Part shown: piece after piece, positions 23,730 to 50,540 of the stretch
Layout of the letters: every line of letters starts with the position of its first letter
Position numbering within the stretch: position 1 is the stretch's first letter
Assembly: GCA_002269645.1 (NCBI GenBank)
Contig: NIVC01004220.1
Span: forward strand, 1 to 54,282
DNA: 54,282 nt
Direction of reading: 5' to 3'
Origin: Macrostomum lignano
Taxonomy: Eukaryota
Translations under genes and position numbers: made by a program
Notes under the pieces: generated by a model
The model's database searches: none
Told to the model about the DNA's origin: nothing
The model's input: the letters and a program-made list of their open reading frames with translations, nothing else

Positions 23730-25257
23730 ATGATGAAGCTAATCAGCAGTGTGCCATCCAGTCTTCTGCTGGAGGTGGTCATTCGCATCGCTATGGCTGT
23801 TGTGTTTGCGTGAGTCGTCTATAAAATCAGATTGAGAATGCTACACAGCTTAGGGGTATAATTCCACCAAATGTGCAAGTAGACAGCTACAGATGGCGGG
23901 GGTAGAACTACAGATTGGGTGGGGGTAGAATGCTACATAATCTGGGGGTAGAGTGCTACATAATCTGGGGGTAGAGTGCTACATAATCTGGGGGTAGAGT
24001 GCTACATAATCTGGGGGTAGAGTGCTACATAATCTGGGGGTAGAGTGCTACATAATCTGGGGGTAGAATGCTACATAATCTGGGGGTAGAGTGCTACATA
24101 ATCTGGGGGTAGAGTGCTACATAATCTGGGGGTAGAATGCTACATAATCTGGGGGTAGAGTGCTACATAATCTGGGGGTAGAGTGCTACATAATCTGGGG
24201 GTAGAGTGCTACATAATCTGGGGGTAGGCAGCTACATAATCTGGGGTTAGGCAGCTACATAATCTGGGGTAGACTCCGGTAGAGCGCAGAATTTGTAGGA
24301 AGATTCTGTAGAACTGAAATTCTAATTAAGAATTATTATATTCCCATTCGCAATCCAATGGTAAATTACCTCACCAGATTTTCCCCTGCATCCCCGCGCA
24401 GCCTCCTTCAGCACGTGGCGCCCCGAGATCGCGACATCCATCCCGAGGAGCTGTGGCTCTATCGCAACAAACCCACCGCGCCCTACTTCCCATCCTGGTT
24501 GGTTGTTGTCATGGTGACAGTTGTCGTGCCGACCCTAATGATGCTGTTGCTACAGCAACGGCAGCAGCTGCAGAAACAGCCACAGCTGCTGGACTCGGAA
24601 GGCTCGAGCAGCTCCGGTTGCTCTTCTAGAAGAGCAACAGCCTGTCAGATGATGTTGTTAGGCTACTCGCTCTCTCTCCTGCTCACCGGCCTCATCACTG
24701 ACGCGGTGAAGCTGATAGTTGGCCGGCCGAGACCGGACTTCTTCTATCGCTGCTTCCCATCGGGCGAGGCCAGACTCGTGCCTGCCGCCGCCGAGTCTGG
24801 CGCAGTACCGGACGATGGCGAACCTGCGCCTCAGCAACTGCAGCAGCTTCTGCTTCTAGTGCCGAGCGCTTGCACTGGCGATCCGGACACTGTGGCCGAG
24901 GGCCGGAAATCGTTCCCGTCCGGTCACGCTTCCATGTCATTCGCCAGCCTTGCCTATCTGTCCTTCCTGCTTGCTGATTGGCTTCAACTGTTTAAATCTT
25001 CGGCTCGTTTGGCGCCATCTGTGCGCCTACTGGCCTGCCTGGCGCCCTGCCTTGCAGCCTCCGGCATCGCACTGAGCCGGCTGGTTGACTTCCATCATCA
25101 TCCAGAGGACGTGCTGGCAGGGTCCACGCTGGGACTGTTGGTTGCTTTTGCCTGCCATCGCTGCTACAGGCGGAGAGAGCCGGTCACTGACCCGGCAGCC
25201 AGCGTTGAGACTGGAGAAGCCAGCGGCGACGGGCTCGGGCGAAGGATTGACGTTTGA
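23730..25257 (+). CDS. Phospholipid phosphatase, PLPP4/PLPP5 (PPAPDC1/DPPL)-like; exons 23730-23809 and 24402-25257 (311 aa)
   Basis: PAP2 motifs K..VGRPRPDF, SFPSGH and SR..DFHHHPEDVLAG, plus family-typical IHPEELWLY. GTGAGT donor and CAG acceptor are in matching phase 2. Confidence 0.9.
23925..24270. repeat. 23-bp intronic minisatellite (~14 copies)
   Basis: Unit TCTGGGGGTAGAGTGCTACATAA, degenerate at both edges. Confidence 0.95.
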
Positions 25258-25519
25258 TAGTTGAAACGGTTTAGGAGTCTCGGAAAGCATCACACGGTGT
25301 CTTGACAACAGTAATAACCCTACGGATTGGCTCATTTGCTATTCATAATTTGACCTAGCGCAGTACTTGATATTATTTTTTTTATGGATAAGACTTTATT
25401 GATGGTTACTTTTATAGAGAATTTTCATTATAGAGAAATTTCACATAGTCACTACTATGGACATTTAACTGTCAGTGACAATTGACTTCCAGTAAAATTT
25501 CACTGTCGATGACTTTGTC

Positions 25520-26145
25520 AGTGACATCTTGACTGTCCGTGACATTTGACTTCCAGTGACATTCGAATTTCAGTAACATTTGACTTTCAGTGACATTTGA
25601 TTGTCAGGGACATTTGACTGTCAGGGACATTTGACTGTCAGGGACATTTGACTGTCAGAGACATTTGACTGTCAGGGACATTTGACTGTCAGGGACATTT
25701 GACTGTCAGTGACATTTGACTGTCAGAGACATTTGACTGTCAGGGACATTTGACTGTCAGTGACATTTGACTGTCAGAGACATTTGCCTGTCAGGGACAT
25801 TTGACTGTCAGGGACATTTGACTGTCAGGGACATTTGACTGTCAGTGACATTTGACTGTCAGAGACATTTGCCTGTCAGGGACATTTGACTGTCAGTGAC
25901 ATTTGACTGTCAGAGACATTTGCCTGTCAGGGACATTTGACTGTCAGTGACATTTGACTGTCAGAGACATTTGCCTGTCAGGGACATTTGACTGTCAGTG
26001 ACATTTGACTGTCAGAGACATTTGCCTGTCAGGGACATTTGACTGTCAGAGACATTTGACTGTCAGAGACATTTGCCTGTCAGGGACATTTGACTGTCAG
26101 AGACATTTGACTGTCAGGGACATTTGACTGTCAGTGACATTTGAC
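25520..26145. repeat. 17-bp minisatellite (~35 copies)
   Basis: Unit TCAGGGACATTTGACTG with G/T/A variants. Confidence 0.95.
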
Positions 26146-26959: not shown

Positions 26960-27692
26960 TCAGTCAAACGGTGACAGGCACTCCGCAATGGCACCGACGT
27001 ATTTGCCCGATGATCTGATGTAGTCGTTCAGGCCGTCGAACGCACGCGCGCCGGAGACGTAGCTCTCGGCCCCGGCGTTGTCTGGTTGGCCAGTCTGCCA
27101 CAAGCTGCCGTCGATGCTGGAGTTGCAGCTGGTCCAGAACCAGCCTCCTCTCGGCTCCTCGCTGCCGGGCAGCTGCCAGCCACCGAGCATCACCATGGTG
27201 TCCGCAGTGTCAGGCGCCAAACTCCGGATATGGTGCAGCTCCTCCAGGTCGCTTACGTCAGCCATGATGATGATTCCAGGCTCCGCGTCGATGTCATTCT
27301 TGGCCACTAGCCAGTCCTGAACTCCAGAGTACATCTTGTACTTTGTGCCGCACAGGTCGTTAGAGAATCCGGCAAAGCACAGAGCTCCGGGCGGCAGTCC
27401 CGGCTGCTGCCTCACGAACACCGGCGCCCTGCGAGTGCAGCCGCAGTCTCTCACGCGCTTGCTGCACCTGTTGAACACGAACAGCTGGCACGGACCGTCG
27501 GCCAGGCTGAACGCCTGACAGTCGAGCTTTGAGTCGCACAGGCTGGCGCAGTTAATCTTTGATGTGGCATCGCTGCGATTCTGCAGCAAACTCTGGCCTG
27601 ATGCACTGAAACTTGTCGAGCTCCAGGTATCGAGCTGCCGAGGCCGCACTCAGCAGCACAGCCGCTGCAACAAGGCCCAGAAGATGCGGCAT
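26960..27692 (-). CDS. PAN/apple + C-type lectin domain protein; signal-peptide ATG (27692) is out of frame with the domains, so possibly a pseudogene
   Basis: PAN-like CASLCDSKLDCQAFS...CQL, then a CTLD with LGG, W.W, WQTGQPDN and GLND. MPHLLGLVAAAVLLSAASAA starts at 27692 in another frame that stops at 27552-27554. Confidence 0.75.
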
Positions 27693-28278
27693 CCCTGGTT
27701 AAGGCTATGCGAAGAAATTTGCCGACTTCGAGGCTTAAGTAGGCAAAAATTCTCCGCCAGTTAAGTGCTCCGTTCGATACTTTCTTAGAGATGCTTTGAT
27801 CCAGGCGGCACTTCAATTTGAGTCAAGATACAGAAAAGAGTTACATCCATTAGCATTCGAATTGCTGGATTGTCCTCCCTTGGCCATCCATACAAGCCGA
27901 TGGAATGTAGGCTCGCTATGTTAGGCTTTGGTATTGAAAGAAATGCTTTTAGGCATGATGAGGAACAGTCAGCAATTGGAGTGGCTTTTATGCTGTTTAC
28001 TCGCGTGAACTGCTCATTGAATTGGGAGTATAATATCGATTATTTTAAAAGCATCTTCATTTATTGGTCTAATGCTTGATATGTTTCGATTGGTATCATA
28101 AGACATTAGAGGCTTTCTGAATCGACAAGTACCCAAGAGTGCATGATTCAGTTTTCAGCAATGTACCGTTCTTGACGATCGGCAATGGTCTCTCCTACTG
28201 GTTACCTAACAGTATCTAACAAAATCAATTTAAACTCGCAATCTATTTTTAGAATGAGTCATGATGAGTCACGTCCGT

Positions 28279-29495
28279 TTGAACACGAACAGCTGGCACG
28301 GACCGTCGGCCAGGCTGAACGCCTGACAGTCGAGCTTTGAGTCGCACAGGCTGGCGCAGTTAATCTTTGATGTGGCATCGCTGCGATTCTGCAGCAAACT
28401 CTGGCCTGATGCACTGAAACTTGTCGAGCTCCAGGTATGGAGTGGCTTGGAGTGGCTTTTATGCTGTTTACTCGCGTGAACTGCTCATTGAATTGGGAGT
28501 ATAATATCGATTATTTTAAAAGCATCTTCATTTATTGGTCTAATGCTTGATATGTTTCGATTGGTATCATAAGACATTAGAGGCTTTCTGAATCGACAAG
28601 TACCCAAGAGTGCATGATTCAGTTTTCAGCAATGTACCGTTCTTGACGATCGGCAATGGTCTCTCCTACTAGTTACCTAACAGTACCTAACAAAATCAAT
28701 TTAAACTCGCAATCTATTTTTAGAATGAGTCATGATGAGTCACGTCCTGTTGAACACGAACAGCTGGCACGGACCGTCGGCCAGGCTGAACGCCTGACAG
28801 TCGAGCTTTGAGTCGCACAGGCTGGCGCAGTTAATCTTTGATGTGGCATCGCTGCGATTCTGCAGCAAACTCTGGCCTGATGCACTGAAACTTGTCGAGC
28901 TCCAGGTATCGAGCTGCCGAGGCCGCACTCAGCAGCACAGCCGCTGCAACAAGGCCCAGAAGATGCGGCATCCCTGGTTAAGGCTATGCGAAGAAATTTG
29001 CCGACTTCGAGGCTTAAGTAGGCAAAAATTCTCCGCCAGTTAAGTGCTCCGTTCGATACTTTCTTAGAGATGCTTTGATCCAGGCGGCACTTCAATTTGA
29101 GTCAAGATACAGAAAAGAGTTACATCCATTAGCATTCGAATTGCTGGATTGTCCTCCCTTGGCCATCCATACAAGCCGATGGAATGTAGGCTCGCTATGT
29201 TAGGCTTTGGTATTGAAAGAAATGCTTTTAGGCATGATGAGGAACAGTCAGCAATTGGAGTGGCTTTTATGCTGTTTACTCGCGTGAACTGCTCATTGAA
29301 TTGGGAGTATAATATCGATTATTTTAAAAGCATCTTCATTTATTGGTCTAATGCTTGATATGTTTCGATTGGTATCATAAGACATTAGAGGCTTTCTGAA
29401 TCGACAAGTACCCAAGAGTGCATGATTCAGTTTTCAGCAATGTACCGTTCTTGACGATCGGCAATGGTCTCTCCTACTGGTTACCTAACAGTATC
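28279..29495 (-). pseudogene. Partial tandem duplicates of the lectin 5' end and upstream region
   Basis: 28279-28438 = 27471-27630; 28449-28686 = 27978-28215; 28747-29495 = 27468-28216. Truncated ORF 28740-28928. Confidence 0.9.
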
Positions 29496-29559
29496 ATTGG
29501 CCCATCCATCCACCACATGACGTACGACTCGCAAAGTACTCGACAAATCTAGCTGAGCG

Positions 29560-30178: not shown

Positions 30179-30208
30179 TGAGTCTGTCTGTGTGTCTGTC
30201 TGTTAGAG

Positions 30209-30253
<45 letters not shown>

Positions 30254-31077: not shown

Positions 31078-31739
31078 CTTCTGTTTGCACGTGACTCATT
31101 CTAAAAATAGAATTTCTAAAAGTAGATATGACTCATCATGACTCATTCTAAAAATAGATTGCGAGTTTAAATTGATTTTGTTAGAATATTACTTTAAGTA
31201 GTGCGTTCTGATATGATTTACAGTTCTCTACAGTCTGTCTGTCTGTATGTCTGTCTGTCAAGTGGCCTTGCAATACGTTTACTTTCTGACTTCAACGAAA
31301 CCTGAGCAGGGCGGAACCGGTAGTTAAAGAAGCAACGAATTTGTCTTTAAATTAACACATTGCCGCAGATTTTCAGTTTGCAGAATTTTCACCTGCCCGT
31401 TATTCGACTCCCAGAGCTTTTAAGCGAGCCACTTCCATTGTTTGTGATTGAGATAATCAAAAGGCGACAGTCAACTCGCAGATGCAGAAACCCGATCGGC
31501 CTAAAATTTGAAGCTAAAGCTAGTTTCAAAGCTATTCAAATTTTAGATAAAAGCCCCAGGAGCGGAGGCGGAGCTTTCAGCTGCACTTGGTTTCTGCTTC
31601 TGTTTTCATCTCTCCCTCGCGAAAGCAGCAAAAGAAGAAGACGGAACACTTGGCGGCCAGTTTTCTGAGGCGCAACCGAAAGCCGAGAAAAAAAGAAGAA
31701 GACGGAAAAAAGACCGAGTGAAGAGTCGCTGCTAAGGAA

Positions 31740-34700: not shown

Positions 34701-37700
34701 CCGACCCTTCAGCGGCATTGCGCAGAATGAAGGCAAGTCAAACTACTTTGATTAGTTGGTTAATCGATTGATTGATTGATTGATTATTTTAGTCAATTCA
34801 ACATTTCATACATTTATCTCTGCTGAAAAACCTACTTTTGCATTTCTACCTCCAACCGGTTCAGGACAGGGACGTTCGGATTTTTCTTGTCGTTCGAGCG
34901 GCCAGAGTGGAAACGGTGAAGTTTGAGTGCTTGGTGAGTGACTCAGGTCGAGTGACTCAGGTAGAGTGACTCGAGTAAAGTAACTCGGGTAGAGTGACTC
35001 GGGTAGAGTGACTCGGGTAGAGTGACTCGGGTAGAGTGACTCGGGTAGAGTGACTCGGGTAGAGTGACTCGGGTAGAGTGACTCGGGTAGAGTGGACTCG
35101 GGTAGAGTGACTCGGGTAGAGTGACTCGGGTAGAGTGACTCGGGTAGAGTGACTCGGGTAGAGTGACTCGGGTAGAGTGACTCGGGTAGAGTGACTCGGG
35201 TAGAGTGACTCGGGTAGAGTGACTCGGGTAGAGTGGACTCGGGTAGAGTGACTCGGGTAGAGTGACTCGGGTAGAGTGACTCGGGTAGAGTGACTCGGTA
35301 GAGTGACTCGGGTAGAGTGACTCGGGTAGAGTGACTCGGGTAGAGTGGACTCGGGTAGAGTGACGGGTAGAGTGACTCGGGTAGAGTGGACTCGGGTAGA
35401 GTGACTCGGGTAGAGTGACTCCAGGTAGAGTGACTCCAGGTAGAGTGACTCGGGTAGAGTGACTCCAGGTAGAGTGACTCGGGTAGATCATCATGAAAAA
35501 GATCATTAGCTAAACAAAGTCTGTTTCATTCAAGATTTCATTTTATTGATACCTTAATCAAATTCAAAACCAGCCAGTTCCACTGGAAGTCAAAAATGAA
35601 AGAAAACGCAAAAAACCAGGGGTTTGAATTCACATGTCGCTCAGGTTTCTAAAGAGTTGGCGGCGATAATCACACCGAGCAGGGTGGTCTCGGCGGCCAG
35701 GATGCCGGACCCGGACAGAAACCACAGGCTGTAGCCGCCCACCTGTAGCCGATCGCCGAAGACGCACAATGCGATGAGCATGCAGATGGCTGCGGTTCAA
35801 GAATGTCAAGTGTGTTAGACATGGGTCTCAAGGGTGTTAGACAGGGGTCTCAAGGGTGTTAGACAGGGGTCTCAAGGGTGTTAGACAGGGGTCTCAAGGG
35901 TGTTAGACAGGGGTCTCAAGGGTGTTAGACAGGGGTCTCAAGGGTGTTAGACAGGGGTCTCAAGGGTGTTAGACAGGGGTCTCAAGGGTGTTAGACAGGG
36001 GTCTCAAGGGTGTTAGACAGGGGTCTCAAGGGTGTTAGACAGGGGTCTCAAGGGTGTTAGACAGGGGTCTCAAGGGTGTTAGACAGGGGTCTCAAGGGTG
36101 TTAGACAGGGGTCTCAGGGGTGTTAGACAGGGGTCTCAAGGGTGTTAAACAGGGGTGTCAAGGGTGTTAGACAGTGGTGTCAAGGGTGTTAGACAGTGGT
36201 GTCAAGGGTGTTAGAGAGTTGTGTCAAAGTGTTAGATAGTGGTTTCAAAGTGTTAGACAGGGGTCTCAAGGGTGTTAGACAGGGGTCTCAAGGGTGTTAG
36301 ACAGGGGTCTCAAGGGTGTTAGACAGGGGTCTCAAGGGTGTTAGACATTGGTGTCAAGGGTGTTAGAGAGTTGTGTCAAAGTGTTAGACAGGGGTTTCAA
36401 AATGTTAGACAGGGTTGTCAAAGTGTTAGACAGGGTTGTCAAAGTGTTAGACAGGGGTATCAAAGTGTTAGGCACGGGTTTCAAAGTGTTAGACAGGGGT
36501 GTCAAAGTGTTAGACACGGGTTTCAAAGTGTTAGACAGGGGTGCCAAGGGTGTTAGACAGGGGTGTCAAGAGTGTTAGACAGGGGTGTCAAGAGTGTTAG
36601 ACAGGGGTGTCAAGGGTGTTAGACATGGGTGTCAAGGGCGTTAGACAGGGGTGTCAAGAGTGTTAGACAGGGGTGTCCAGAGCGAGGCAATACTAAGACT
36701 GAAAAAATAGTGATATAAAACAGCACGGATGTTCACACAGTGAGCAGTTATTTACCTCCCAAAGCCAGGGCACTGAAGCTGATGATGCTCGGCACGTTGC
36801 TATCGTTAAGAGATTTCACCGCCATGGTGAGGACATTGGCGAGCAGCGAAATTGATAGACAGATTGTGCCGATGAGGGCCATGGCTATGACTGCCCTGCC
36901 GTTCACTGAAATTGTTTATTTTATGCATCCCCTGTTAGACATTGATATCCCCTGTTAGACATTGATATCTCCTGTTAGACATTGATATCTCCTGTTAGAC
37001 ATTGATATCCCTTGTTAGACATTGATATCCCATGTTAGACATTGATATCCCATGTTAGACATTGATATCCCATGTTAGACATTGATATCCCCTGTTAGAC
37101 ATTGATGTTCCCTGTTAGACATTGATATCCCCTGTTAGACATTGATATTCCCTGTTAGACATTGATATCCCATGTTAGACATTGATATCTCCTGTTAGAC
37201 ATTGATATCCCATGTTAGACATTGATATCCCCTGTTAGACATTGATATCCCCTGTTAGACATTGATATCCCCTGTTAGACATTGATATCCCCTGTTAGAC
37301 ATTGATATCCCCTGTTAGACATTGATATCCCCTGTTAGACATTGATATCCCATGTTAGACATTGATATCCCCTGTTAGACATTGATGTTCCCTGTTAGAC
37401 ATTGATATCCCCTGTTAGACATTGATATTCCCTGTTAGACATTGATATCCCATGTTAGACATTGATATCTCCTGTTAGACATTGATATCCCATGTTAGAC
37501 ATTGATATCCCCTGTTAGACATTGATATCCCCTGTTAGACATTGATATCCCCTGTTAGACATTGATATCCCCTGTTAGACATTGATATCCCCTGTTGGAC
37601 AATGGTATTATCTGTTTGTTCTGAACAATCACAGACAACAGAATTGCCACTTACCTGAGCCATCCAGAGCCAGCATCCTGGAGGTGGTGGTTCCATATCT

Positions 37701-40700
37701 GGGGTCCCAAACCACCCCCCAGCCGGGAGTGACGCAAGCAATGATGGCCAGCGCCAGAGCAGAAAACAGGCCGCCCGTGTACAGCTTTTGATAGAGCCTT
37801 GATGCTGTCATTTGCTGTCAGAGAGACGGACAAGTTTATAAACTATTTTATATACTATTTCGAAACTCTAACTTTACTCCATGTCAGCTTAGCTCTTTTA
37901 ATATGCAACTTCTTGAAAACAACTCTCTTCCATAGACTAAAAAAGTGACAATAAATTTAAACATAGAGGTTAGCAATTCTTCAATAATTTTGCTTTGCTT
38001 TGGTTGAGAAACTGATTTTGCAAAAAACACTCATTACAGTCATGCGCTATTAAAGATCATGATATCCAACAATTACCGTACGTTATAAAGCTTACATCTG
38101 TATCCCCATTCCCATCCCCATTCCCATCCTCATTCCCATCCCCATTCCCATCCCCATTCCCATCCCCATTCCCATCTTCATTCCCATCCCCATTCCCATC
38201 CCCATTCCCATCCCCATTCCCATCCCCATTCCCATCCCCATTCCCATCCCAATTTCCATCCCCGTTCCCATTCCCATTCCCATTCCCATTCCCATTCCCA
38301 TTCCCATTCCCATTCCCATTCCCATTCCCATCCCCATTCCCATCCCCATTCCCATCCCCATTCCCATCCCCATTCCCATCCTCATTCCCATCCCCATTCC
38401 CATCCTCATTCCCATCCCCATTCCCATCCCCATTCCCATCCTCATTCCCATCCCCATTTCCATCCCCATTCCCATCCCCATTCCCATCCCCATTCTTATC
38501 CCCATTCCCATCCCCATTCCTATCCCCATTCCCATCCCCATTCCCATCCCCATTCCCATCCCCATTCCCATCCCCATTTCCATCCCCATTCCCATCCCCA
38601 TTCCCATCCCCATTTCCATCCCCATTCCCATCCCCATTCCCATCCCCATTCCCATCCCCATTCCCATCCCCATTCCCATCCTCATTCCCATCCCCATTCC
38701 CATCCCCATTCCCATCCCAATTTCCATCCCCGTTCCCATCCCCATTCCCATTCCCATTCCCATTCCCATCCCCATTCCCATCCTCATTCCCATCCCCATT
38801 CCCATCCCCATTCCCATCCCCATTCCCATCCTCATTCCCATCCCCATTCCCATCCTCATTCCCATCTTCATTCCCATCCCCATTCCCATCTTCATTCCCA
38901 TCCTCATTCCCATCCCAATTTCCATCCCCGTTCCCATCCCCATTCCCATTCCCATTCCCATTCCCATCCCCATTCTCATCCTCATTCCCATCCCCATTCC
39001 CATCCCCATTCCCATCCCCATTCCCATCCTCATTCCCATCCCCATTTCCATCCCCATTCCCATCCCCATTCCCATCCCCATTCCCATCCCCATTCCCATC
39101 CCTATTCCCATCCCTATTCTCATTCCCATCCCTATTCCCATCCCTATTCTCATTCCCATCCCTATTCCCATCCCCATTCCCATCTTTCATCCCATCTCAT
39201 GCTCATCTGTCTGCATTCAGAAATCGCCGATCCCGAATCAGGTGCAAAATCAGTCCCACTACTTACCGTGTCGTCGCAGATCGAGCAGTTCGGCATGGTC
39301 GGCCCTAAGTACTTCTGGATCCAGCTGGGTATGACGCAAACCTTTGACCCGCCCAAGGAACCCGGCCAGTGCGACAGTCCGGACCAGCTGAAGGCCGGGG
39401 CCGAGAACTCCGTGTACTTTAAAGCTGACCTCGTTGTCATTGGCAACGAGACCGGCATGGGTTCTGCGGTGAGCCAGCCTAGATTAGCAATCCATTCTAT
39501 TCCTTCATCAGTGATGCTGGCTAGATTAACAATCCATTCTATTCCTTCATCAGTGATGCTGGCTAGATTAGCAATCCATTCTATTCCTTCATCAGTGATG
39601 TTGGCTAGATTAGCAATCCATTCTATTCCTTCATCAGTGATGCTGGCTAGATCAGCAATCCATTTTTAGGTCAGCGGTCGAGTGTCCTTAAATCTCTACA
39701 TTCGTTTCGCTTTCAGGCCTCCAGAGAGCTGTACCGAGATTTTCTGCAGTCGAATTCTCACCTGGATACCGATACCGTGTCCATCAGCGACCTTGGCGTT
39801 CGAATCGATGCAGTGCTGACAGCTGCTTTGGCTCTGAACCGAACTCTTAGGAAATATGCGTACTCCACGGAGCTCGATCTGGACGAGAGCCCTTTCAAGG
39901 ACCAGCTGCTGAGCGAAATCAGGGCTGTGGACTTTGAGGGCTTCACGGTGCGTTCTGACTGGCCCTTTCGTAGATTTGACAGGCTCTCAGTTGAGCGAGT
40001 CTAACACTCGATTGAGCGAGTCTACCACTCGATTGAGCGAGTCTAACACTCGATTGAGCGAGTCTAACACTCGATTGAGCGAGTCTAACACTCGATTGAG
40101 CGAGTCTTACACTCGATTGAGCGAGTCTAACACTCGATTGAGCGAGTCTAACACTCGATTAGTTGAGTCTAACACTCGATTAGTTGAGTCTAACACTCGA
40201 TTGAGCGAGTCTAACACTCGATTAGTTGAGTCTAACACTCGATTAGTTGAGTCTAACACTCGATTAGTTGAGTCTAACACTCGATTAGTTGAGTCTAACA
40301 CTCGATTGAGCGAGTCTAACACTTGATTGAGCGAGTCTAGCACTTAATTGAGTGAGATTCAGTAACTGTTATTCGATATGCTCCGCAGGGTCGAGTGAAA
40401 CTCGATGGCAACGGTGATCGGCTTGCTAACGCGGTGGTCTACCAGATTCGAAGTTCGTAACTCCACTTTTGTGAATGCTATCATCTCTTTCATCATTTTT
40501 ATTCATCATTGGTTGCAAATTTTTAAACATCATTGCAGACTTTGAGCCGGTGGCTGTGGCCTTTTTCAACACCTATGACAACATTATAGACTGGAGCGAA
40601 GAACTGCAGTTTTCAGGTAAGAGAAATCACACCATGGACAGTGAAAGCAGAATGCTTGAAAGGCATTAACTTTCCAATATAACAAAGGCAGCAACTGAGT

Positions 40701-43066
40701 TTGATTCAAAAGTTTACCCACCTATGAAAACAGTGAACTTTTATGAAATCCGTTAAGAAAATGCAACTGCATTGCGAGTGTTGCTCTTGTGTATTGAACG
40801 CGTAGGTTTGGTTGCTAGAAAAACTTAGTGAGTCTTGCCGGACCACGGTCTGTATTTATATATTAACATGCACGCTGTGAGAAAAATTGGATGTTAGATT
40901 ATTGCGTAACGCGTTTCGCAAATCAACGTGCCCGACGGGCCGCAAACTGAACACAGAGTTAAGTACGTATGGTCGCGCACCCACAACAGTTGCCATGTGA
41001 CCAAAGATGCATAGGATCAATAAGAGGAATCAAAGATACGTATATTACATACTTTAGTACGAGCGTGTAGAAGATTTTTCTGACATTAATCCCATTCACT
41101 GGATACGCTCGTAGATAGAAACAAACCATTTTAGTACAGTGGACTAGCCACATAGACCCCCCCTAGCGGGTCTAGCATTGAAAACTCCAACCCCGCCGTG
41201 GACTCAGGTGAGGGACCGCCGGAGGACAAACCGAAGGTGGTGAAAAATCAACAGGTAGTCAGCCGAACCAACGCTATTGTGATGCTGTGCCTCTGCTCAA
41301 TTTGCGTTGCCATCACGCTGAGCTTCATGGTCGCCAATTTTCACTATCGGCACATCCGAATGATCAAAATGTCGTCGCCTAACATCAATAATTTGATTGG
41401 CATCGGCTGCATTCTGAGCTACGCGTCCTGCACCGTGTCCGCTGTTGGCAGCAGCTGGCTCCAGGACACGGCCGCCTGCTGGCTGCAGTCCGTCAGCCTC
41501 TGCTTCGGCTACTCCATCGCCTACGGAGCCATGCTGGCCAAGACCTGGCGGGTTCACGTCATCTTTGCTACGAGAAATATGCGCCGGGTGGTGAGCGGCG
41601 GGTTGTGATTGGCTGGGAGAGTCAGTCTGCGATTGCCTGGGACAGAAGCGGGATGTGATTGGCTGGGGGTCAGTCTGCGATAATCTGAGAGAGAAGCGGG
41701 CTGTGATTTGCTGGGGAGAATCAGGTTGTGATAAACTAATGAATATTTTTATGTTCAGTATTACCTCTTATCTGAATTTTTCAGTCCATCAAGGACCATC
41801 AGTTGGCCGCTGTACCGCTCGCCCTAGTAGTCCTCGACGTGATTTTATTTACTGTCTGGGCCTTGGTGGATCCGATGGAGCTGATTAACGTGAAATACGC
41901 GGTTGTGGTAAATTACTTTGATTGCAAAATTGCCTTCTTTAAGTAAAGCATAGCTAATACTTAGCATTTTTCTTTTCAAAAGGAATCGATTCAAAAGGGC
42001 TCAGTTGAGGTCAACATGGCTCAGACGTGTCACAGCAACTTTCTCACTATCTGGCTTGTGACCTTCGTTGGTTACAAAGGTTAGCCGATCAATTTATGAT
42101 TTTATAGAGCGGGTAAGGGGTGAAGAGTTAGGTGGGTGAAGAGTGAAATTGGTGAAGAGTGAGGTGGGTGATGAGTGAGGTGGGGGAGAGTGTGGGTGAG
42201 AGTGACACATTGAGTGACTCATCCTAAATGCATGCACCTCTCTTTGCAGGATTTCTCCTGGCCTTCGGCATCTTCTTTGCCTGGGAGACCCGCGCAGTCC
42301 ACATCGAGAGCCTGAACGACTCGAAGAAGATCGGCATCTGCGTCTACAACACCATGGTGATGGGAGCCCTGGGAGTCGTCATGGCTTTCGTCCTGCCAGC
42401 CAGCGAGTTGAACCTTCGGTTCCTTCTCATTAACGGCTGCATCATCGTCTGCTGCACTACCGCTGTGGTCATCGTGTTTGGCAGCAAGGTGAATTTTCTC
42501 CCGACTCATGATTGAAAATCCAAAAAATACGTAGAGATGCGTTGCTGTTGAAGTGCGGTACAACTGATACTAAAACTGGCTCAGTTGAAAATTATTGATA
42601 TAATAGAGAAGTGGAGTGGCGGAGTGAGTTGGTTGGTGGCGGAGTTAGCTGGTGGGTAGCGAGTGAGGTGGTGGGTGGCGAGAGTCGGTGGGTATCGTAG
42701 TGAGGTGGTGGGTATCATATTGAGGTGGTGGCTAGCGGAGTGAGGTGGGCGGGTGGCGGAGTGAGGTGGGCATCGTAGTGAGGTGAGTGGCGGAGTGAGG
42801 CTATAATGATAAGCTTGTCAACAATTTACAAGAGACGAGAAGCGTTATTATAGTCATTACATGCACGTGCATAGCTCGCATCTCCCTAATAAATACCAAC
42901 CGCACAGATACTGCTCCTGGTTCAGCACGGGCCATCGAAGATTGAGGACAGTAGCAACTGGCTGCCAGAGAACCAGTCCTCGTCCGCTATGCAGACGGCC
43001 ACTGGAGGCCAAAGGCCCTCCGGTCAGCAGAGCACCGAGGGTGGGCGGGCGACCTCTAGCGCCTGA
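31740..43066 (+). CDS. GABA-B-receptor-like class C GPCR (Venus flytrap + 7TM), ~750 aa, 14 exons
   Basis: Exons: 31740-31958, 33103(or 33094)-33231, 33683-33853, 34631-34732, 34865-34933, 39280-39468, 39717-39947, 40389-40452, 40539-40616, 41208-41590, 41785-41907, 41983-42079, 42250-42488, 42908-43066; all phases are compatible. Motifs: signal peptide, SPALSNKDKY, GPKYFW, MSSPNINNLI, LAKTWRVH, AWETR, LNDSKKIG..VYN. Confidence 0.9.
31962..32438. repeat. 7-bp-based satellite (GAGATAT/GAGGTAT) with higher-order units, GPCR intron 1
   Basis: Starts directly at the donor GTAAGATATGAG. Confidence 0.95.
33255..33615. repeat. GA-rich low-complexity tract, GPCR intron 2
   Basis: Purine-rich GAGAGGGAG runs. 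Confidence 0.9.
34170..34555. repeat. 24-bp minisatellite, GPCR intron 3
   Basis: Unit CTCTCCACCCTCTCCTACACCCTC. Confidence 0.95.
34936..35487. repeat. 14-bp minisatellite, start of GPCR intron 5
   Basis: Unit GAGTGACTCGGGTA, starting at the donor GTGAGTGACTC. Confidence 0.95.
35641..37811 (-). CDS. Small four-TM claudin/PMP22-superfamily-like protein (151 aa), nested antisense in GPCR intron 5; exons 37655-37811, 36756-36905, 35641-35789
   Basis: Canonical GT-AG sites with phase 1/1 joins give an uninterrupted ORF MTASRLYQK...ACVTPGW...GGYSLWFLSG...ANSLET* with four hydrophobic segments. Family assignment is from topology and weak motifs only. Confidence 0.8.
35810..36680. repeat. 21-22-bp minisatellite in intron 2 of the nested gene
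   Basis: Unit AGGGTGTTAGACAGGGGTCTCA grading into CAAAGTGTTAGACAGGGGTGT. Confidence 0.95.
36932..37597. repeat. 20-bp minisatellite (~33 copies) in intron 1 of the nested gene
   Basis: Unit TGTTAGACATTGATATCCCC. Confidence 0.95.
38103..39195. repeat. Hexamer satellite (CCCATT/CCCATC)n, ~1.1 kb
   Basis: Alternating CCCATT and CCCATC with sparse variants. Confidence 0.95.
39478..39660. repeat. 42-bp minisatellite, ~4 copies, GPCR intron 6
   Basis: Unit GCTAGATTAGCAATCCATTCTATTCCTTCATCAGTGATGCTG. Confidence 0.95.
39985..40345. repeat. 21-bp minisatellite, GPCR intron 7
   Basis: Unit GAGTCTAACACTCGATTGAGC. Confidence 0.95.
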
Positions 43067-44143: not shown

Positions 44144-44176
<33 letters not shown>

Positions 44177-44374: not shown

Positions 44375-44407
<33 letters not shown>

Positions 44408-44408
44408 T
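43918..44408. repeat. (GTCT)n-rich microsatellite
   Basis: GTCT runs interspersed with TTAGT. Confidence 0.95.
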
Positions 44409-45610: not shown

Positions 45611-45766
45611 CAGTAAGAGAATCAATACGGTCTTACGATTTTCAGGGTCACGATGATCAATTAAGGTCAAAATAAAAAAAACAGAGTATATTATCTAAAG
45701 AGATTTCAGGGTCAAACAAGGACATGAAGGTTGAATTCTAGACTGTGATAAAAGGCCAACCCCAGA

Positions 45767-48700
45767 TTAAGACTCGGCTATGACTTCGGCAGCAGCTAGC
45801 AGGTAAGCCAGATTGTTGCTAAGCCGATCGTTTGGTCCCAAAGATCGAACTCCGGACCTAGAGGCGACTTCGTCCTCTAGGCGAGCGAACGAAGCCGATT
45901 CAGCGCGCAGCTTGTCTCTCTGGCGGCACAGGTGCGACCAGAGCTCCTGGGAGTGATACAGCGGCATCAGCTGGCCAAGCAGCTGCGACTCGCGCTCGGC
46001 GGACAGTCCGCTAGACCGGTGAGCACTGCTCAAGCTAGCCAAGTCCGACCTGCGGGTTGAAATTACACTCAAGATTAGCAATCCACTCTATTCCTTCATC
46101 AGTGATGCTGGCTAGATTAGCAATCCATTCTATTCCTTGCCCACCCGGCCAGGCCACCCCACTCGCCTGTAGCTGCAGTAGATCCGGTACTCCAGCAGGG
46201 ATTTCAGCAGCAGCACACAGATCTCCGTCAGGCGGGCGACGCCGCTCGCCTCGCCACCGTCCTCGGCAGGCTGGCGCCGCCGATCTCGCTCGGCAAAAGC
46301 GCGGCCGTGCTGCCGGACAAACCCGGCCACGTCTCTGTAGATCCGACGGGCGTCAGACGCCGGCAACTGCCGTCGGTCCTCGGCCACCCAGCAGCCGGCC
46401 AAGTATGTGGCCGCCGATTCCAGGAAACAGCGGCGCCGATGCCGATCTCCGGCACCGTTGCTGGGGCCACCGGCGCCGCCTTCGTTGCCGTCAAGTTGCT
46501 GACGGAGCGACTTGGCCCGTCGGAAAAGCGACTCGCGCGACTCCTGAAGCCAGCGCTGCTCCAGAGCGTCGGCCCGGGCAGCCTGCAGCCGCTCCAGCTG
46601 CAGCAGCGAGTCGCCAGCCGGCGCAGCCACCGATGCCGACGCGGCTGCCGCAGTGGAAGTCGAAGGCGCAACGGCGGCCGCTGCGGCGGCTGCGGCGGCG
46701 GCGGCCAACTCGGCTGAGGACTGCACCGGCGGCACGGCGGCCGTGGGGCGCAGCGGCGGTGGAACGTCCTCCGTCTGGGTGGCGGCCTCCTCGACGCAGG
46801 CTGGCCGAGGCTGCCGCCGCTGCCGCTCCAAGTATTTCAAGGGCACGGACAGCTGCAGGCCGCTTTGGTGCCTGACGGGCGGATGCGGCGGGCAGGAAAG
46901 CCTTGGCCGCTTATCGACTGACGCTGGCGATGACAAATAGAGGTCAGAGTCGGCGTCCGCGGCGTCGGCAAGATGCATGTCGGTGCCCACCGTGCCGGAC
47001 GTGGCTGTGGAGTCAGTCCTCCGCCTGCGCGGCTTGCGCTTCACTGCCGGACCGGCTGCGGCGGCAGAAATCGCGTTTGAGAAGCGAAGCGACAACGGCG
47101 CGTCCTCGGAGTCGTTCCAGACCGAGTCCTGCGGCTCCTGCGGCGTCGGCTTTGGCTGGGAAGGACGGCAGTTCAGGTTGGGGAAAGATTGGGATTTCAA
47201 TATCGCAACCCTAGCGCAATCCCTTCTGTGACATAGGCGATTCTGCCCATTAAGCTGGCCTATGTGCCTCTCTAGGGTTGGCCCTCATGGGTGAGTTCCC
47301 AGTGACTGAAACACTGTGAGGGATGCTTGGAGTGACTGAAACACTGTGAGGGATGCTTGGAGTGACTGAAACACTGTGAGGGATGCTTGGAGTGACTGAA
47401 ACACTGTGAGGGATTCTTGGAGTGACTGAAACACTGCGAGGGATGCTTGGACTGACTGAAACACTGTGAGGGATGCTTGGAGTGACTGAAACACTGCGAG
47501 GGATGCTTGGAGTGACTAAAACACTGTGAGGGATGCTTGGAGTGACTGAAACACTGCGAGGGATGTCTGGAGTGACTGAAACACTGTGAGGGATGCTTGG
47601 ACTGACTGAAACACTGTGAGGGATGCTTGGAGTGACTGAAACACTGTGAGGGATGCCTGGAGTGACTGAAACACTGTGAGGGATGCCTGGAGTGACTGAA
47701 ACACTGAGGGATGCTTGGAGTGACTGAAACACTGTGAGGGATGCTTGGAGTGACTGAAACACTGTGAGGGATGCCTGGAGTGACTGAAACACTGTGAGGG
47801 ATGCCTGGAGTGACTGAAACACTGTGAGGGATGCTTGGAGTGACTGAAACACTGTGGCTGTGAGGGATGCCTGGAGTGACTGAAACACTGAGGGATGCTT
47901 GGAGTGACTGAAACACTGTAATGCACAGCACAGCACACTTTGATGCGTGTAAAATAAAATAAGAAAATGCTGCAATTCACTGAAAAGACATGCACGCCTA
48001 GAATTCTCTTTCTGTTAAGCTGCATTGCAAACGAAACAGGCGATAGGCGCCGAAATTGCTCGGTAATTATCTTGTCCCATCTGGCGCTCCCCGGCAAACA
48101 AGGCAAAAAATATTATGATAAGCATCCATCCTGCGACTCGGCTAGGTAAAATTCTAGGATTAATAGGGTCTATGGTCTCGCATAATAATATTCCTCAAAT
48201 CCCACTTAATCTGGAGTTTCAGGTCCTCAAACCCCACTAAATCTGGGATATCATCAGTTCCTCAAAATCTCACTAAATCTGGGATCTCATCAGTTCCTCA
48301 AATCTCACTATATCTGGGATTTCAGCAGGTCCTCAAACCCCACTAAATCTGGGATCTCATCAGTTCCTCAAAATCTCACTATATCTGGGATTTCAGCAGT
48401 TCCTCAAATCCCACTAAATCTGGGATTTCAGCAGTTCCTCAAATCTCAATAAATCTGCGATCTCATCAGTTCCTCAAATCTCAATAAATCTGCGATCTCA
48501 TCAGTTCCTCAAATCTCAATAAATCTGCGATCTCATCAGTTCCTCAAACCCCACTAAATCTGGGATCTCATCAGTTCCTCAAACCCCACTAAATCTGGGA
48601 TTTCAGCAGTTCCTCAAACCCCACTAAATCTGGGATCTCATCAGTTCCTCAAACCCCACTAAATCTGGGATCCCATCAGTTCCTCAAATCTCAATAAATC

Positions 48701-50540
48701 TGCGATCTCATCAGTTCCTCAAATCCCACTAAATCTGGGATCTCATCAGTTCCTCAAATCCCACTAAATCTGGGATCTCATCAGTTCCTCAAATCCCACT
48801 AAATCTGGGATCTCATCAGTTCCTCAAATCCCACTACATCTGGATCTCATCAGTTCCTCAAATCCCACTATATCTGGGATTTCATCAGTTCCTCAAATCC
48901 CACTAAATCTGGGATCTCATCAGTTCCTCAAATCCCACTAAATCTGGGATCTCATCAGTTCCTCAAATCCCACTAAATCTGGGATCTCATCAGTTCCTCA
49001 AATCCCACTACATCTGGGATCTCATCAGTTCCTCAAATCCCACTAAATCTGGGATCTCATCAGTTCCTCAAATCCCACTAAATCTGGGATCTCATCAGTT
49101 CCTCAAATCCCACTAAATCTGGGATCTCATCAGTTCCTCAAATCCCACTAAATCTGGGATCTCATCAGTTCCTCAAATCCCACTACATCTGGGATCTCAT
49201 CAGTTCCTCAAATCCCACTATATCTGGGATCTCAAGTTTTGGACTACACAGATGAACAAGGACTCACCGAGGCGCCAGAATCAGGATCCGTTAACCGAGC
49301 CAGCCGCACCTGACGCGCCTCTCTCGCATAATCGACATTGTTAACTGTGAGCTGCCGCGGCGACACCAGACATGGCTGGGTGCAGGTAGACTCTGCGTCC
49401 GACATGCTGCTGTCCGCGGCTCCGAGGTTTCCGTGAGTCGGGCTCGGCGGGAGCGGCCGCAACGGCGGCGAGGAGGCGGCATCGGCGGCTACGAGGCGAT
49501 GAGCGCGGCGGAAGAATTGCAGGCAGCGTCGAATCTCCGCCTCCTGATGCCGCAGCGGCCGCGGCGGCTGCTGCTGCTGGAACGGCGACGCCTCGGAGCC
49601 GAGGGCCGGCGACCAGCCGAGAGAGCCGCCACAGTTCGACTGTCGGCCGACGCTGGAGCCGCTCGGAGTGTCGGCGGCTGAGGAATTCGCGGCGGGGGCA
49701 ACGGCGGCTGCGGCAGAGGCGGTCGACCCAAGCGCGGAGATTACAGGCGGCAAAGAGCCAGTTGATGTCGACACAGGGGTGAGGCTGCGGTGTGTTGGTG
49801 ATTAAATTGGCTTGGATTGGAGTAGGGTGGCGCTTATTGGGGCGCTTATGACATGCTTAGGGTAGAGAGCTTATGACACGCTTAGGGTAGAGCGCTTATG
49901 ACACACTTAGGGTAGAGCGCTTATGACAAGCTTAGGGTAGAGCGCTTATGACACGCTTAGGGTAGAGCGCTTATGATTATGACACGCTTAGGGTAGAGCG
50001 CCACACTAATAACACGCTTAGGGGGTAGAGCGCTTATGACACGCTTAGGGTAGAGCGCTTATGACACGCTTAAGGGGTAGAACACTTATGACACGCTTAG
50101 GGTAGAGAGCTTATGCTACGCTTAGGGTAGAGCGCTTATGCTACGCTTAGGGTAGAGCGCTTATGACACGCTTAGGGTAGAGCGCCGACACCCTCACCTT
50201 CTGCGAGCATGGACTTTGCCATTAGCAGTTCTGGCAGCCGAGCTAGAAGCGCTCAAAGGGGTGGGCGTGAGGTCGCCGCTAACCAGAGGCGAAGGTTGCG
50301 AAGCAGCCGGTCGATGCTTCATCATAATTTGCTGCCTCTGCAACTGCTGCTGCTGCTGTTGTTGATGGCGCTGATGGTTGCGCAGGTAGGCCTCTTGCAC
50401 GCCCGGATAGATTTTGTCGATGGTAATTTTGTGCTGCTTGCAGGCGTTCATAACAGCGTGATAGTCGCCAAATATAGCGCTCATCTGGTCGTGCCATCTG
50501 GGGTCGCTGATTGCCGACATTGGAGCTGGCTTGCCAAGCA
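45767..50540 (-). CDS. AF4/FMR2 (lilliputian/AFF)-like nuclear protein; exons 50198-50540, 49268-49784, 46167-47155, 45767-46049; 5' end unresolved (in-frame ATG at 50520 or an upstream exon)
   Basis: The four blocks join in compatible phases (one GC donor needed). N-terminal QMSAIFGDY resembles IQ.MLG.Y. C-terminal RRAKSLR...FLESAA...IYRDV...LLLKSLLEYRIY...LYHSQELW resembles the AFF C-terminal homology domain. The middle is Ser/Pro/Ala/Gln-rich. Homology judged by eye. Confidence 0.6.
46072..46137. repeat. ~1.5 copies of the 42-bp unit found at 39478-39660
   Basis: AGATTAGCAATCCACTCTATTCCTTCATCAGTGATGCTGGCTAGATTAGCAATCCATTCTATTCCTT. Confidence 0.95.
47300..47918. repeat. 30-bp intronic minisatellite (~20 copies)
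   Basis: Unit GAGTGACTGAAACACTGTGAGGGATGCTTG. Confidence 0.95.
48225..49235. repeat. 35-bp intronic minisatellite (~29 copies)
   Basis: Unit CAGTTCCTCAAATCCCACTAAATCTGGGATCTCAT. Confidence 0.95.
49845..50186. repeat. 25-bp intronic minisatellite (~13 copies)
   Basis: Unit GCGCTTATGACACGCTTAGGGTAGA. Confidence 0.95.

Follow-up and report, generated by a model that had tools for sequence, protein, structure and literature searches.

How do minisatellites in different introns of one gene neighbourhood come to share short sequence cores? The question is raised by a 54,282-nucleotide stretch of nuclear DNA of Macrostomum lignano (contig NIVC01004220.1, here called the window), in which tandem arrays make up 28% of the sequence. 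A preliminary description had proposed that a factor or a mobile or templated mechanism nucleates arrays at such cores, in units that are otherwise different. Simple and tandem repeats account for 15% of the M. lignano assembly, and transcripts overlapping repeat annotations were omitted from its GenBank annotation (PMC5730564). TRF identified head-to-tail arrays in the window with periods of 12-42 bp, 13-91 copies and 84-96% matches, which places them within the unit range of minisatellites (10-60 bp). For comparison we used a copy of the locus that is 98-99.6% identical to the window (L002), a homeolog (L001) and, as the sole unlinked locus, 23.5 kb of M. lignano DNA with eight arrays and 8.5 kb of repeats (L003).

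The 23-bp minisatellite (23920..24273, + strand; 15.4 copies of TGGGGGTAGA(GTG/ATG/CAG)CTACATAATC) is located in intron 1 of a PLPP5-like (PAP2) gene, the exons of which were mapped by tblastn, and degenerate proto-units are present in its left flank (23887-23930). The 14-bp minisatellite (34936..35487, + strand; about 39 copies of GTAGAGTGACTCGG, with divergent units at the edges) has GTGAGTGACTCAG as its first unit, and its start coincides exactly with a donor-like GTGAGT. It is followed by the 22-bp array (35806..36674, + strand; 40 copies of TCAAGGGTGTTAGACAGGGGTC), the 20-bp array (36927..37601, - strand; 34 copies of ATCCCCTGTTAGACATTGAT) and the 21-bp array (39991..40356, - strand; 17 copies, reverse complement TCGAGTGTTAGACTCGCTCAA). 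The latter is located in an intron of a class-C GPCR gene; with the GPCR exon as query no Macrostomum protein was matched. In the region 42118..42800 (+ strand), a 16-bp array (42118-42192) and a second 20-bp array (42619-42800) lie on either side of the GPCR 7tm_3 exon. The 30-bp minisatellite (47301..47919, + strand; 21 copies) has a unit in which TGAGGGATGCTTG is followed by GAGTGACT. Further downstream are the 35-bp minisatellite (48191..49234, + strand; 30 copies) and the 25-bp minisatellite (49842..50185, + strand; about 13 copies of GGGTAGAGCGCTTATGACACGCTTA). The 25-bp array ends at a distance of 16 nt from a donor-like site on the minus strand (GTGAGG), which comes after the open reading frame 50194-50547. 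For the reading frame labelled AFF-like as host of the 25-bp array, neither a Pfam match nor a homologue was found.

The four cores listed in the preliminary description are all present where they had been placed. GGGTAGAG[TC]G occurs 51 times in the window, always on the + strand and exclusively in the 23-bp (10), 14-bp (31) and 25-bp (10) arrays. For TGTTAGAC the counts are 34 (22-bp array) and 33 (20-bp array) on the + strand and 14 (21-bp array) on the - strand; it can also be read on the + strand of the 20-bp array because the core is near-palindromic (TGTTAGACA/TGTCTAACA). GAGTGACT is present in the 14-bp array (33 times) and the 30-bp array (18 times). AATCTGGG, the only sequence that the 35-bp unit has in common with the 23-bp unit, occurs 18 and 15 times in these arrays, with 4 stray copies in 18-bp arrays. 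Three further shared cores were detected that had not been described, namely GGGATGCTTG (18/30 bp), ATCTGGGGG (18/23 bp) and GAGTGAGGTGG (16/20 bp). Most cores contain a G-run, and in non-array DNA they occur at or below expectation and are not enriched.

A cyclic comparison of about 20 unit types in both orientations should by itself yield a few shared 8-mers, and selection by eye might do the rest. We compared 19 non-redundant unit consensuses in 171 pairs, scoring a shared 8-mer as a hit. An 8-mer was common to 15 of the 171 pairs, compared with 3.5-4.5 pairs after mono- or dinucleotide shuffling (0 of 2000 shuffles reached 15) and 4.1 +/- 2.1 pairs for real unmasked genomic segments of matched lengths (p ~3e-4). 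When arrays were picked automatically, 17 pairs were found against 4.2 expected, and 14 against 2.25 with a stricter threshold. Two 8-mers were even common to three units (0.05-0.09 expected), and the excess remained after local families had been collapsed (11 pairs against 2.5). The claim that the cores are shared non-randomly was therefore borne out: sharing clearly exceeds that of composition-matched shuffles. Chance as the explanation for the ensemble is largely refuted and, as a general reading, very improbable, with 15-17 pairs against about four, 0 of 1000-2000 shuffles reaching such numbers, and whole-unit alignments at z >7. It stands for individual pairs only: about four sharing pairs correspond to the chance expectation, and these are probably AATCTGGG (23/35 bp) and the pairs with the long 42- and 74-bp units. 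The pairs involving long units (35, 42 and 74 bp) fit chance, as does the sharing between window and L003 and within L003. A background k-mer bias can be discarded as the cause, since the null is the same whether it is taken from real unmasked segments or from shuffles, and since non-array DNA shows no enrichment of the cores.

Of the 15 sharing pairs, 13 share on the same strand, compared with about 1.7 expected from shuffles. We considered this bias (13 against 2 pairs) as a sign of a directional mechanism, but gave it less weight because about seven arrays, linked in a single network, supply the pairs and because the 18-bp array occurs in both orientations. Non-independence within one family explains the bias only in part.

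The statement that the units are otherwise different is only partly right, since the alignments of several units with a common core extend clearly past it. The trio containing TGTTAGAC (22, 20 and 21 bp) is located within 4.5 kb and can be aligned over the whole unit; the 22-bp unit aligns over the whole period with the reverse complement of the 20-bp unit (z=7.4) and of the 21-bp unit (z=7.3), and the 22-bp array is a founder-like member of this local family. The 16- and 20-bp units, 0.4 kb apart and with the core GAGTGAGGTGG, are homologous over their full length and resemble a GGGTAG..AGTGA family. A G-rich family, TGGGGG(TA/AT)G..TG, comprises the 18-, 23-, 14-, 25- and 30-bp units. Here, the 23-bp unit is identical to the 18-bp unit in 11 of 15 aligned columns, matches the 14-bp unit at 12 of 13 positions and the 25-bp unit at 12 of the first 15, and TGAGGGATGCTTG of the 30-bp unit matches the 18-bp unit at 12 of 13 positions. 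Eight unit types can be aligned to the consensus TGGGGGTAGAGTGCT, and the blocks GGGATGCTTG and GGGTAGAGTG are identical at 6 of 10 positions and fit one family alignment. The blocks shared by the 18- and 30-bp units and by the 14- and 30-bp units have sharp boundaries without similarity beyond them. Judging from these alignments, the excess of shared 8-mers appears to come from two or three families of related arrays. Alignment outside the cores points to homology and not to a shared recognition site. Between the arrays at 23.9-50.2 kb, no flank homology was detected beyond chance or overlapping spacers. A common transposon or a segmental duplication behind the arrays was discarded, as no such shared flanks were found and self-BLAST revealed no dispersed similarity linking the arrays.

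The copies of the locus show how these arrays change. The 23-bp array has 15.4 copies in the window, 27.4 in L002 and 20.4 in L001; for the 17-bp array the numbers are 40.6, 235.6 and 15.6, where figures for long arrays may carry assembly error. Over the three copies of the locus array copy numbers vary 2- to 15-fold and variant maps differ as well, i.e. the arrays are hypervariable. The sole polymorphic positions of the 23-bp array are 8-10, the last three, of the core GGGTAGAGTG. The three variants at these positions (GTG, ATG, CAG) are interspersed and are found in each copy of the locus (window, L001 and L002) at unequal frequencies, ATG being the commonest in L001 and CAG in L002; the proto-unit flanking the array carries CAG. 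The mismatch rate in the 23-bp arrays is higher in the core (2-11%) than outside it (<1%). For TGTTAGAC the picture is reversed in the 22-bp array (1.2% mismatches versus 8.3% in the rest of the unit) and the 20-bp array (0.4% versus 3.8%), while in the 21-bp array both are equal. Expansion and contraction by slippage or unequal exchange is thus shown here by the differences in copy number and the interspersed variants. An 18/19-bp unit of the homeolog contains CCACCC where the window has CCCCC. Each array at 13.4-34.5 kb has a positional counterpart in L001, except for an inserted block and a transposon-containing segment, showing that arrays outlast homeolog divergence at the same sites. Not a single de novo array birth was found between the homeologs in the approximately 21 kb compared.

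The sole new array block between the homeologs is an insertion of ready-made 18- and 23-bp arrays. This block of about 1.9 kb (16094..17959, + strand), located outside the 23.9-50.2 kb interval, consists of alternating 23-bp (AAAGAGCCACCATGTCAAACATA) and 18-bp (TCTGGGGGATGCTTGCTA) arrays and is absent from L001; its 18-bp unit belongs to the G-rich family. The 3' terminus (17934-17959) is Helitron-like, with the hairpin CCCCCAACGGGGG, 10 nt (GCGAAGATTG), CTAG and a host T. An older second copy (13381..14732, - strand) has the opposite orientation, is kept in L001 and L002 and carries an 18-bp array (13498-13681) and a 23-bp array (13951-14732). Its 3' end near 13381-13385 on the minus strand terminates in CCCCCATTGGAGGGCGAAGATTGCTAG followed by T and can be read as CCCCCATTGGAGGG-CGAAGATTG-CTAG before the T. 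The approximately 110-bp unique 3' region of the insertion is 78% identical to this inverted copy at 13.4 kb. On its left the insertion ends within the 23-bp array. A perfect direct repeat of 103 bp borders the block on both sides, formed by a host segment (15991..16093, + strand) that recurs at 17959-18061 and is present as a single copy in L001. Helitrons have a defined 5' terminus (TC...) and insert without target-site duplication; no such 5' terminus was identified here. Whole array blocks can thus be copied to nearby new sites in either orientation. Of the proposed mobile mechanism, the copying of ready-made arrays is therefore seen, while the nucleation of arrays at cores is not supported.

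Only the 18+23-bp composite has a GC-rich hairpin that precedes CTRR by about 10 nt, with a host T behind it. The 146-bp 3' region has no further match in the window, L001 or L003 and none beside the arrays of 23.9-50.2 kb. Helitron-like 3' remnants beside these arrays were likewise sought without success, a generic scan for a hairpin and CTRR yielding a few unconvincing extra candidates.

In the whole of L003, its eight arrays included, none of eight cores (the four of the preliminary description and four from the 8-mer comparison) is present. Three pairs of window and L003 units share an 8-mer compared with 3.7 expected, and within L003 there is one sharing pair compared with 0.7 expected; 3 of 133 pairs across loci thus contrast with 15 of 171 within the window (Fisher p=0.025). 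In this small sample of one locus, with cores absent and sharing at chance, the result fits cores that are not enriched genome-wide.

With chance confined to individual pairs, two other processes have to be weighed. In the model of the preliminary description, core-bearing arrays are nucleated or preferentially expanded by a sequence-specific factor or by motif-dependent instability, such as that of a G-run that forms structures or of a motif of recombination hot spots. In its favour are the sharing well above composition-matched and genomic-background nulls, the G-run in most cores and the better conservation of TGTTAGAC in the 22- and 20-bp arrays. In addition, GTG seems to be a derived variant of the 23-bp unit and CGG a derived junction of the 14-bp unit, so the two arrays may have drifted toward the same 10-mer. 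However, nucleation at cores is not supported: core positions 8-10 are the most variable of the 23-bp array, with frequencies that differ among the three alleles or homeologs, none of the eight cores occurs in L003, where cross-locus sharing is at chance, none is enriched outside arrays, similarity reaches beyond the cores, and no de novo arrays separate the homeologs. G-quadruplex potential was discarded as a unifying property: in a scan for at least four G3+ runs on one strand, as in CEB1-like minisatellites, only the 12-bp array qualifies with loops of <=7 nt, the 14-, 22-, 24- and 12-bp arrays qualify with loops of <=12 nt, and the 25-, 30-, 35- and 21-bp arrays never do. We therefore regard nucleation at cores as quite improbable. 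An origin of the cores in splicing signals was also considered: GTCTAACA contains a branch-point-like CTAAC, GAGTGA resembles a GTGAG donor, the start of the 14-bp array is a GTGAGT, and a 42-bp array takes up one entire intron. Since the + strand carries the G-rich cores in the PLPP gene, itself on the + strand, as well as beside minus-strand reading frames, such an origin cannot be general and is left as an idea.

Alternatively, short patches could be copied in cis. A nascent strand might switch to a nearby array during repair or replication restart, or ectopic conversion might occur; 8-15 nt would be copied, the chimeric unit amplified and the units would be mosaics. Several units can indeed be read as mosaics of overlapping shared blocks: the 18-bp unit as ATCTGGGGG plus GGGATGCTTG, the 14-bp unit as GGGTAGAGTG plus GAGTGACT and the 30-bp unit as TGAGGGATGCTTG plus GAGTGACT plus 8 unique nt. 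The sharp bounds of the 18/30-bp and 14/30-bp blocks, the excess among linked arrays only and not with L003, the lack of flank homology and the strong same-strand bias are consistent with this. On the other hand, the best-supported pairs align as whole units with indels, as predicted by descent, and a mosaic is unnecessary where GGGATGCTTG and GGGTAGAGTG fit one family alignment. No event junction or intermediate is visible, and without a within-locus excess in L003 the process would not be general. Patch copying is unlikely in our view. A bolder version, which we consider distinctly unlikely, is that Macrostomum seeds minisatellites in a lineage-specific manner: either template switching in the course of repair or a Helitron-like element that carries arrays may copy 8-15-nt pieces of arrays to nearby introns, where they would then be amplified, so that gene neighbourhoods share strand-consistent cores. 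If true, this could help explain the 15% of tandem repeats and the many introns that consist almost wholly of arrays.

On balance, we lean slightly towards descent, according to which a repeat-rich flatworm genome here carries hypervariable intronic minisatellites of an ordinary kind and the cores are residual homology within a few families, with no need for a core-recognising factor. After the copying of array blocks, small indels would shift the period (from 22 to 20 or 21 bp, from 16 to 20 bp, and from 18 to 23, 14 or 25 bp), homogenisation would fix the new unit, and daughter arrays would keep only a stretch of 8-13 nt identical. Two or three such families in a 50-kb neighbourhood would yield the 8-mer excess, with about four further pairs due to chance. 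As there is neither flank homology nor a Helitron-like terminus beside the arrays of 23.9-50.2 kb, we infer the route by which related units came to lie in introns of different genes that are 10-30 kb apart. Some arrays look locally born, such as the 14-bp array at its donor site and the L003 41-bp array, in which each unit covers the acceptor together with the 7 nt at the start of an exon; their likeness to other arrays would then be convergence or chance. The sharply bounded 18/30-bp and 14/30-bp blocks would fit patch copying as well as descent. If descent is correct, the locus is a clean small-scale case of the rise and decay of minisatellite families by block copying, period change and homogenisation, in a model flatworm with a genome unusually rich in tandem repeats. 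It is also a warning for motif hunting, since the cores of linked arrays may pass shuffle tests and yet reflect homology instead of mechanism. Greater weight would be due to the cores only if they were enriched genome-wide independently of whole-unit homology.

The Jeffreys-type families of vertebrates are core-sharing hypervariable minisatellites, in which the core is conserved in an otherwise divergent unit and which are tied to recombination hot spots and meiotic instability. The arrays of the window resemble them in their 12-42 bp units in tandem arrays within genes, in the great variation in copy number between locus copies with interspersed variant repeats, and in a 10-15-nt G-rich motif common to several loci. 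They differ in that, in the G-rich family, other parts of the unit are better conserved than the core (GGGTAGAGTG), although TGTTAGAC surpasses the rest of the unit in the 22- and 20-bp arrays. Moreover, Jeffreys-type cores are found in many dispersed unlinked loci, whereas here sharing above chance was found between linked arrays within about 40 kb and not with the one unlinked locus. DINE-type elements of Drosophila are non-autonomous elements of the Helitron/Helentron type with central tandem repeats. In the oyster, non-autonomous Helentrons with central tandem repeats of one or two kinds spread these through the genome (PMC7492417). The 18+23-bp arrays inside an element with a 3' hairpin, CTAG and host T are similar to DINE and to Cg_HINE of the Pacific oyster, some of which likewise have two repeat types in consecutive order (PMC7492417), but the block units are 18-23 bp and not satellite-sized monomers, and the arrays of 23.9-50.2 kb have no conserved element ends nearby. 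The two inverted copies with conserved 3' ends and unequal array lengths, one of them absent from the homeolog, resemble Helitron/Helentron elements, whereas the perfect 103-bp direct repeat is atypical of Helitrons. In the library and concerted evolution model of satellite DNA, related repeat variants coexist and are amplified unequally, and arrays are homogenised internally. Although we deal with short intronic minisatellites of a single gene neighbourhood and not with heterochromatic satellites, the same is seen in the window, where variants coexist, are amplified unequally by array and allele, and each array is homogenised internally.

The preliminary description of this region, made from the sequence alone, proposed that short cores common to otherwise different intronic repeat units (23925-50186) are the sites at which minisatellite arrays are nucleated. 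All of these cores, among them GGGTAGAG, TGTTAGAC and GGGATGCTTG, were found by motif search in the TRF arrays and on the strands described. We compared 19 non-redundant unit consensuses of the window as circles and on both strands. At least one 8-mer is common to 15 of the 171 unit pairs, and 22 canonical 8-mers occur in at least two units, two of them in three units. Shuffling led to an expectation of 3.5 (mononucleotide) or 4.5 (dinucleotide) sharing pairs, and 15 pairs were reached in 0 of 2000 shuffles. Real non-array segments of equal lengths from the window and from the unlinked locus L003 yielded 4.1 +/- 2.1 pairs (p about 3e-4 for 15). An automated array choice resulted in 17 pairs versus 4.2 expected, and a stricter score in 14 versus 2.25. 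Thus, sharing goes beyond that of composition-matched shuffled units; taken as an ensemble it is real, even if chance alone would give about four of the pairs, and pure chance is excluded as its cause.

Pairwise circular alignments and a multiple alignment of rotated units revealed that the kinship of core-sharing units reaches past their cores. The three arrays with TGTTAGAC, with units of 22 bp (35806-36674), 20 bp (36927-37601) and 21 bp (39991-40356), span 4.5 kb. Over the full period, the 22-bp unit can be aligned with each of the other two once these are reverse-complemented, both with the 20-bp unit (ACAGGGG-TCTCAAGGGTGT-TAGACAGGGG versus ACAGGGGATATCAA---TGTCTA-ACAGGGG, z=7.4) and with the 21-bp unit (GTGTTAGAC...CTCAA..GTGTTAGAC, z=7.3). 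The core TGTTAGACA almost equals its own reverse complement, TGTCTAACA, which explains why two arrays of apparently opposite orientation both show it on the + strand. The reverse complement of TGTTAGAC, GTCTAACA, includes a branch-point-like CTAAC and is located on the sense strand of a + strand class-C GPCR gene in the 21-bp array. In the 20-bp array, the distance between the end of the last unit and an acceptor-like TTTCAG on the minus strand is 21 nt, and the frames at 35.6-38 kb may lie on either strand. Full-length homology was also found between the 16- and 20-bp units of a pair of arrays (42118-42800), which are 0.4 kb apart with a GPCR exon between them.

A G-rich family comprises the 18-, 23- (23920-24273), 14- (34936-35487), 25- (49842-50185) and 30-bp (47301-47919) units, which align to TGGGGG(TA/AT)G(AG/CT)TGCT, and more loosely the 16/20-bp pair. 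Matches to the 23-bp unit number 11 in 15 aligned columns for the 18-bp unit, 12 in 13 positions for the 14-bp unit and 12 in the first 15 positions for the 25-bp unit. In the 30-bp unit we found TGAGGGATGCTTG, a 12/13 match to the 18-bp unit. Collapsing the two tight local families leaves 11 sharing pairs versus 2.5 expected. The pairs outside families involve long units of 35 (48191-49234), 42 and 74 bp, and their number is that predicted by chance. To this group belongs AATCTGGG, common to the 23- and 35-bp units.

Three loci of the M. lignano Mlig_3_7 assembly were set against the window. With 90-96% identity and a collinear arrangement along about 13.4-34.5 kb, L001 (NIVC01000150.1) is a homeolog or divergent copy, and L002 (NIVC01004447.1), 98-99.6% identical to 12.8-30.7 kb, is the same locus. 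The third, L003 (NIVC01002734.1, 23.5 kb), is a PAP2 locus that is paralogous and not linked to the window. Tandem arrays occupy 28% of the window and 36% of L003; simple and tandem repeats together account for 15% of the genome in the published assembly (PMC5730564). The 23-bp array is located in intron 1 of a PLPP5-like gene on the + strand (exon 1, 23667-23789; exon 2 from about 24400), whose reading frame at 24358-25257 (+) encodes a PAP2/PLPP5-like protein with 95% identity to M. lignano BOX15_Mlig021581g2. The class-C GPCR is encoded on the + strand by an ANF_receptor exon (39666-39989) and 7tm_3 exons (41156-41605 and 42228-42512). The frames labelled 'AFF-like' in the preliminary description (46130-47200, 49244-49774 and 50194-50547, all on the minus strand) are long, GC-rich and of low complexity, with no Pfam domain and no homologue detected among 5.8 billion proteins. 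No Macrostomum protein was found in the database for the GPCR or the 'AFF-like' gene, probably because repeat-overlapping transcripts were taken out of the GenBank annotation (PMC5730564).

Nucleation at the cores found no support in these comparisons. In the 23-bp array, three unit variants are interspersed (GGGTAGA-GTG/ATG/CAG-CTACA), and the window has mostly GTG (10 of about 15 units); the commonest variant of L001 is ATG and that of L002 is CAG. The polymorphism is located exactly at positions 8-10 of the proposed 10-mer, the remainder of the unit being almost invariant, and degenerate proto-units in the upstream flank carry the CAG variant. The edge units of the 14-bp array read CAG|GTGAGTGA, CAG|GTCGAGTGA and CAG|GTAGAGTGA; judged from these, the GGG of its core, like the core variant of the 23-bp array, looks derived. 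The 18/19-bp unit of L001 has CCACCC in place of the CCCCC of the window, and TGTTAGAC is better conserved than the remaining unit in two of its arrays (22 and 20 bp), which does not apply to the 21-bp array. None of the eight cores searched, the four proposed ones and four more, occurs in the eight arrays of L003 (8.5 kb in total). Window-by-L003 pairs with a common 8-mer number 3 versus 3.7 expected, a lower rate (3/133) than within the window (15/171; Fisher p=0.025), and the probability of three or fewer such pairs under the enrichment of the window is about 7e-4; sharing within L003 amounts to 1 pair versus 0.7 expected. In this small sample of one unlinked locus, the cores are therefore not enriched as a genome-wide role would demand. 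In non-array DNA, on both strands, cores and sub-motifs are at or below expectation, and the core-sharing arrays do not have G-quadruplex potential in common. From 13.4 to 34.5 kb, every array is matched at the corresponding site of L001 by the same unit with another copy number; beyond this, the two differ only by a block of ready-made arrays (16094-17958) and a segment that contains a transposon (18202-22050). A factor that recognises the cores is possible, but with variable cores and arrays kept in place it is disfavoured and quite improbable.

The array block (1.87 kb) consists of alternating 23- and 18-bp arrays, its 18-bp unit being a member of the G-rich family. L002 has the block and L001 lacks it. 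On either side of it, 103 bp of host sequence form a perfect direct repeat (15991-16093 and 17959-18061), and it terminates in ...GATTCTATCCAGATGTCCCCCAACGGGGGGCGAAGATTGCTAG, followed by T. An older, oppositely oriented copy with the same ending (about 13381-14732) is present in both L001 and L002, and the two copies are 78% identical across the last 109 bp. A hairpin about 10 nt before CTAG, which abuts host T, as in this block, marks a Helitron-type 3' end. Assignment of the element to this type is tentative, since no 5' end could be defined and a flanking duplication as long as 103 bp is atypical of Helitrons. Among the arrays at 23925-50186, none has a GATTCTATCCAGATGTCCCCCAACGGGGGGCGAAGATTGCTAG-type terminus and none a shared flank.

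The shared cores are best explained as the residue of descent within minisatellite families. Arrays would be long-lived with fast length change, and blocks would now and then be copied nearby in either orientation; small insertions and deletions together with homogenisation would then alter the period, and the cores would be the stretches still identical afterwards. Turnover of length and variants, persistence in position, one block insertion and whole-unit homology of the tight families were observed here, and we infer how the G-rich family came to lie in introns of several genes at distances of 10-30 kb. What stood of the original interpretation is that sharing is non-random and that blocks are copied. 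Some arrays fit descent less well, as they seem to be born of local sequence: the 14-bp array begins at a GTGAGT donor-like site, and all units of a 41-bp array in L003 contain the acceptor TTCCAG and CATCACG, the 7 nt with which PAP2 exon 2 begins, which points to a duplication spanning the intron-exon junction. The common blocks of the 18/30-bp and 14/30-bp units have sharp boundaries and are likewise a poorer fit. Locally born arrays and sharp blocks thus keep short-patch copying between arrays alive, an explanation we regard as unlikely.

The 41-bp array (L003 10167-12582, 58.6 copies) fills intron 1 of the PAP2 paralog, and the 23-bp array, located in the homologous intron of the PLPP5-like gene, is unrelated to it. 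The 41-bp unit of this 2.4-kb array is related to a 42-bp minisatellite that apparently makes up the whole GPCR intron 39472-39664 (donor GCG|GTGAGCCAGC, 4.4 units, ...CCATTTTTAG|G) and recurs at 46072-46138 (1.6 units, 97% identity). The copy number of a 17-bp array, GACATTTGACTGTCAGT, is 40.6 in the window (25459-26145), 235.6 in the 98-99.6% identical L002 (13060-17059) and 15.6 in the homeolog L001 (11901-12165), reflecting either extreme length instability or collapse and expansion in assembly. A Tc1/mariner-like transposon (18487-20100; ends 18487-18655 and 19928-20100 inverted repeats, about 170 bp long and 88% identical) with a frameshifted DDE_3 transposase on the minus strand (19089-19865 and 18806-19189) has no counterpart in L001. 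A foldback-like element (20214-21458) has 98% identical 280-bp inverted repeats (20214-20493 and 21181-21458) around a 151-bp x 3.8 tandem array (20593-21172) and is followed by a 42-bp array (21538-21707), of which the window has 4.0 copies and L002 has 2.0. The segments 27467-28216 and 28746-29495 are a perfect 750-bp duplication, which overlaps a 471-bp x 2 tandem repeat and repeats part of a cysteine-rich frame (26960-27649, minus strand) with no Pfam hit. An inverted, 100% identical copy of a 57-bp segment (28215-28271 and 28687-28742) lies at 31129-31185. We also found a satellite-like repeat with a 160-bp unit (10581-11401; 93% matches among 5 copies) and a 12-bp array, ATCCCCATTCCC (38102-39184; 91 copies), the only array of the window with canonical G-quadruplex potential (minus strand).

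We found no paper on minisatellite families or cores in Macrostomum. A dispersed core family of the Jeffreys type has its core at unlinked loci, whereas at L003, the one unlinked locus compared, such membership failed. The behaviour of the arrays is that of classical hypervariable minisatellites; in one part, the system is similar to tandem repeats borne by Helitrons or Helentrons, as in the oyster genome, where arrays were spread by non-autonomous Helentrons with one or two kinds of central tandem repeats (PMC7492417). The arrays are thus a fresh example of a known phenomenon and no new system.
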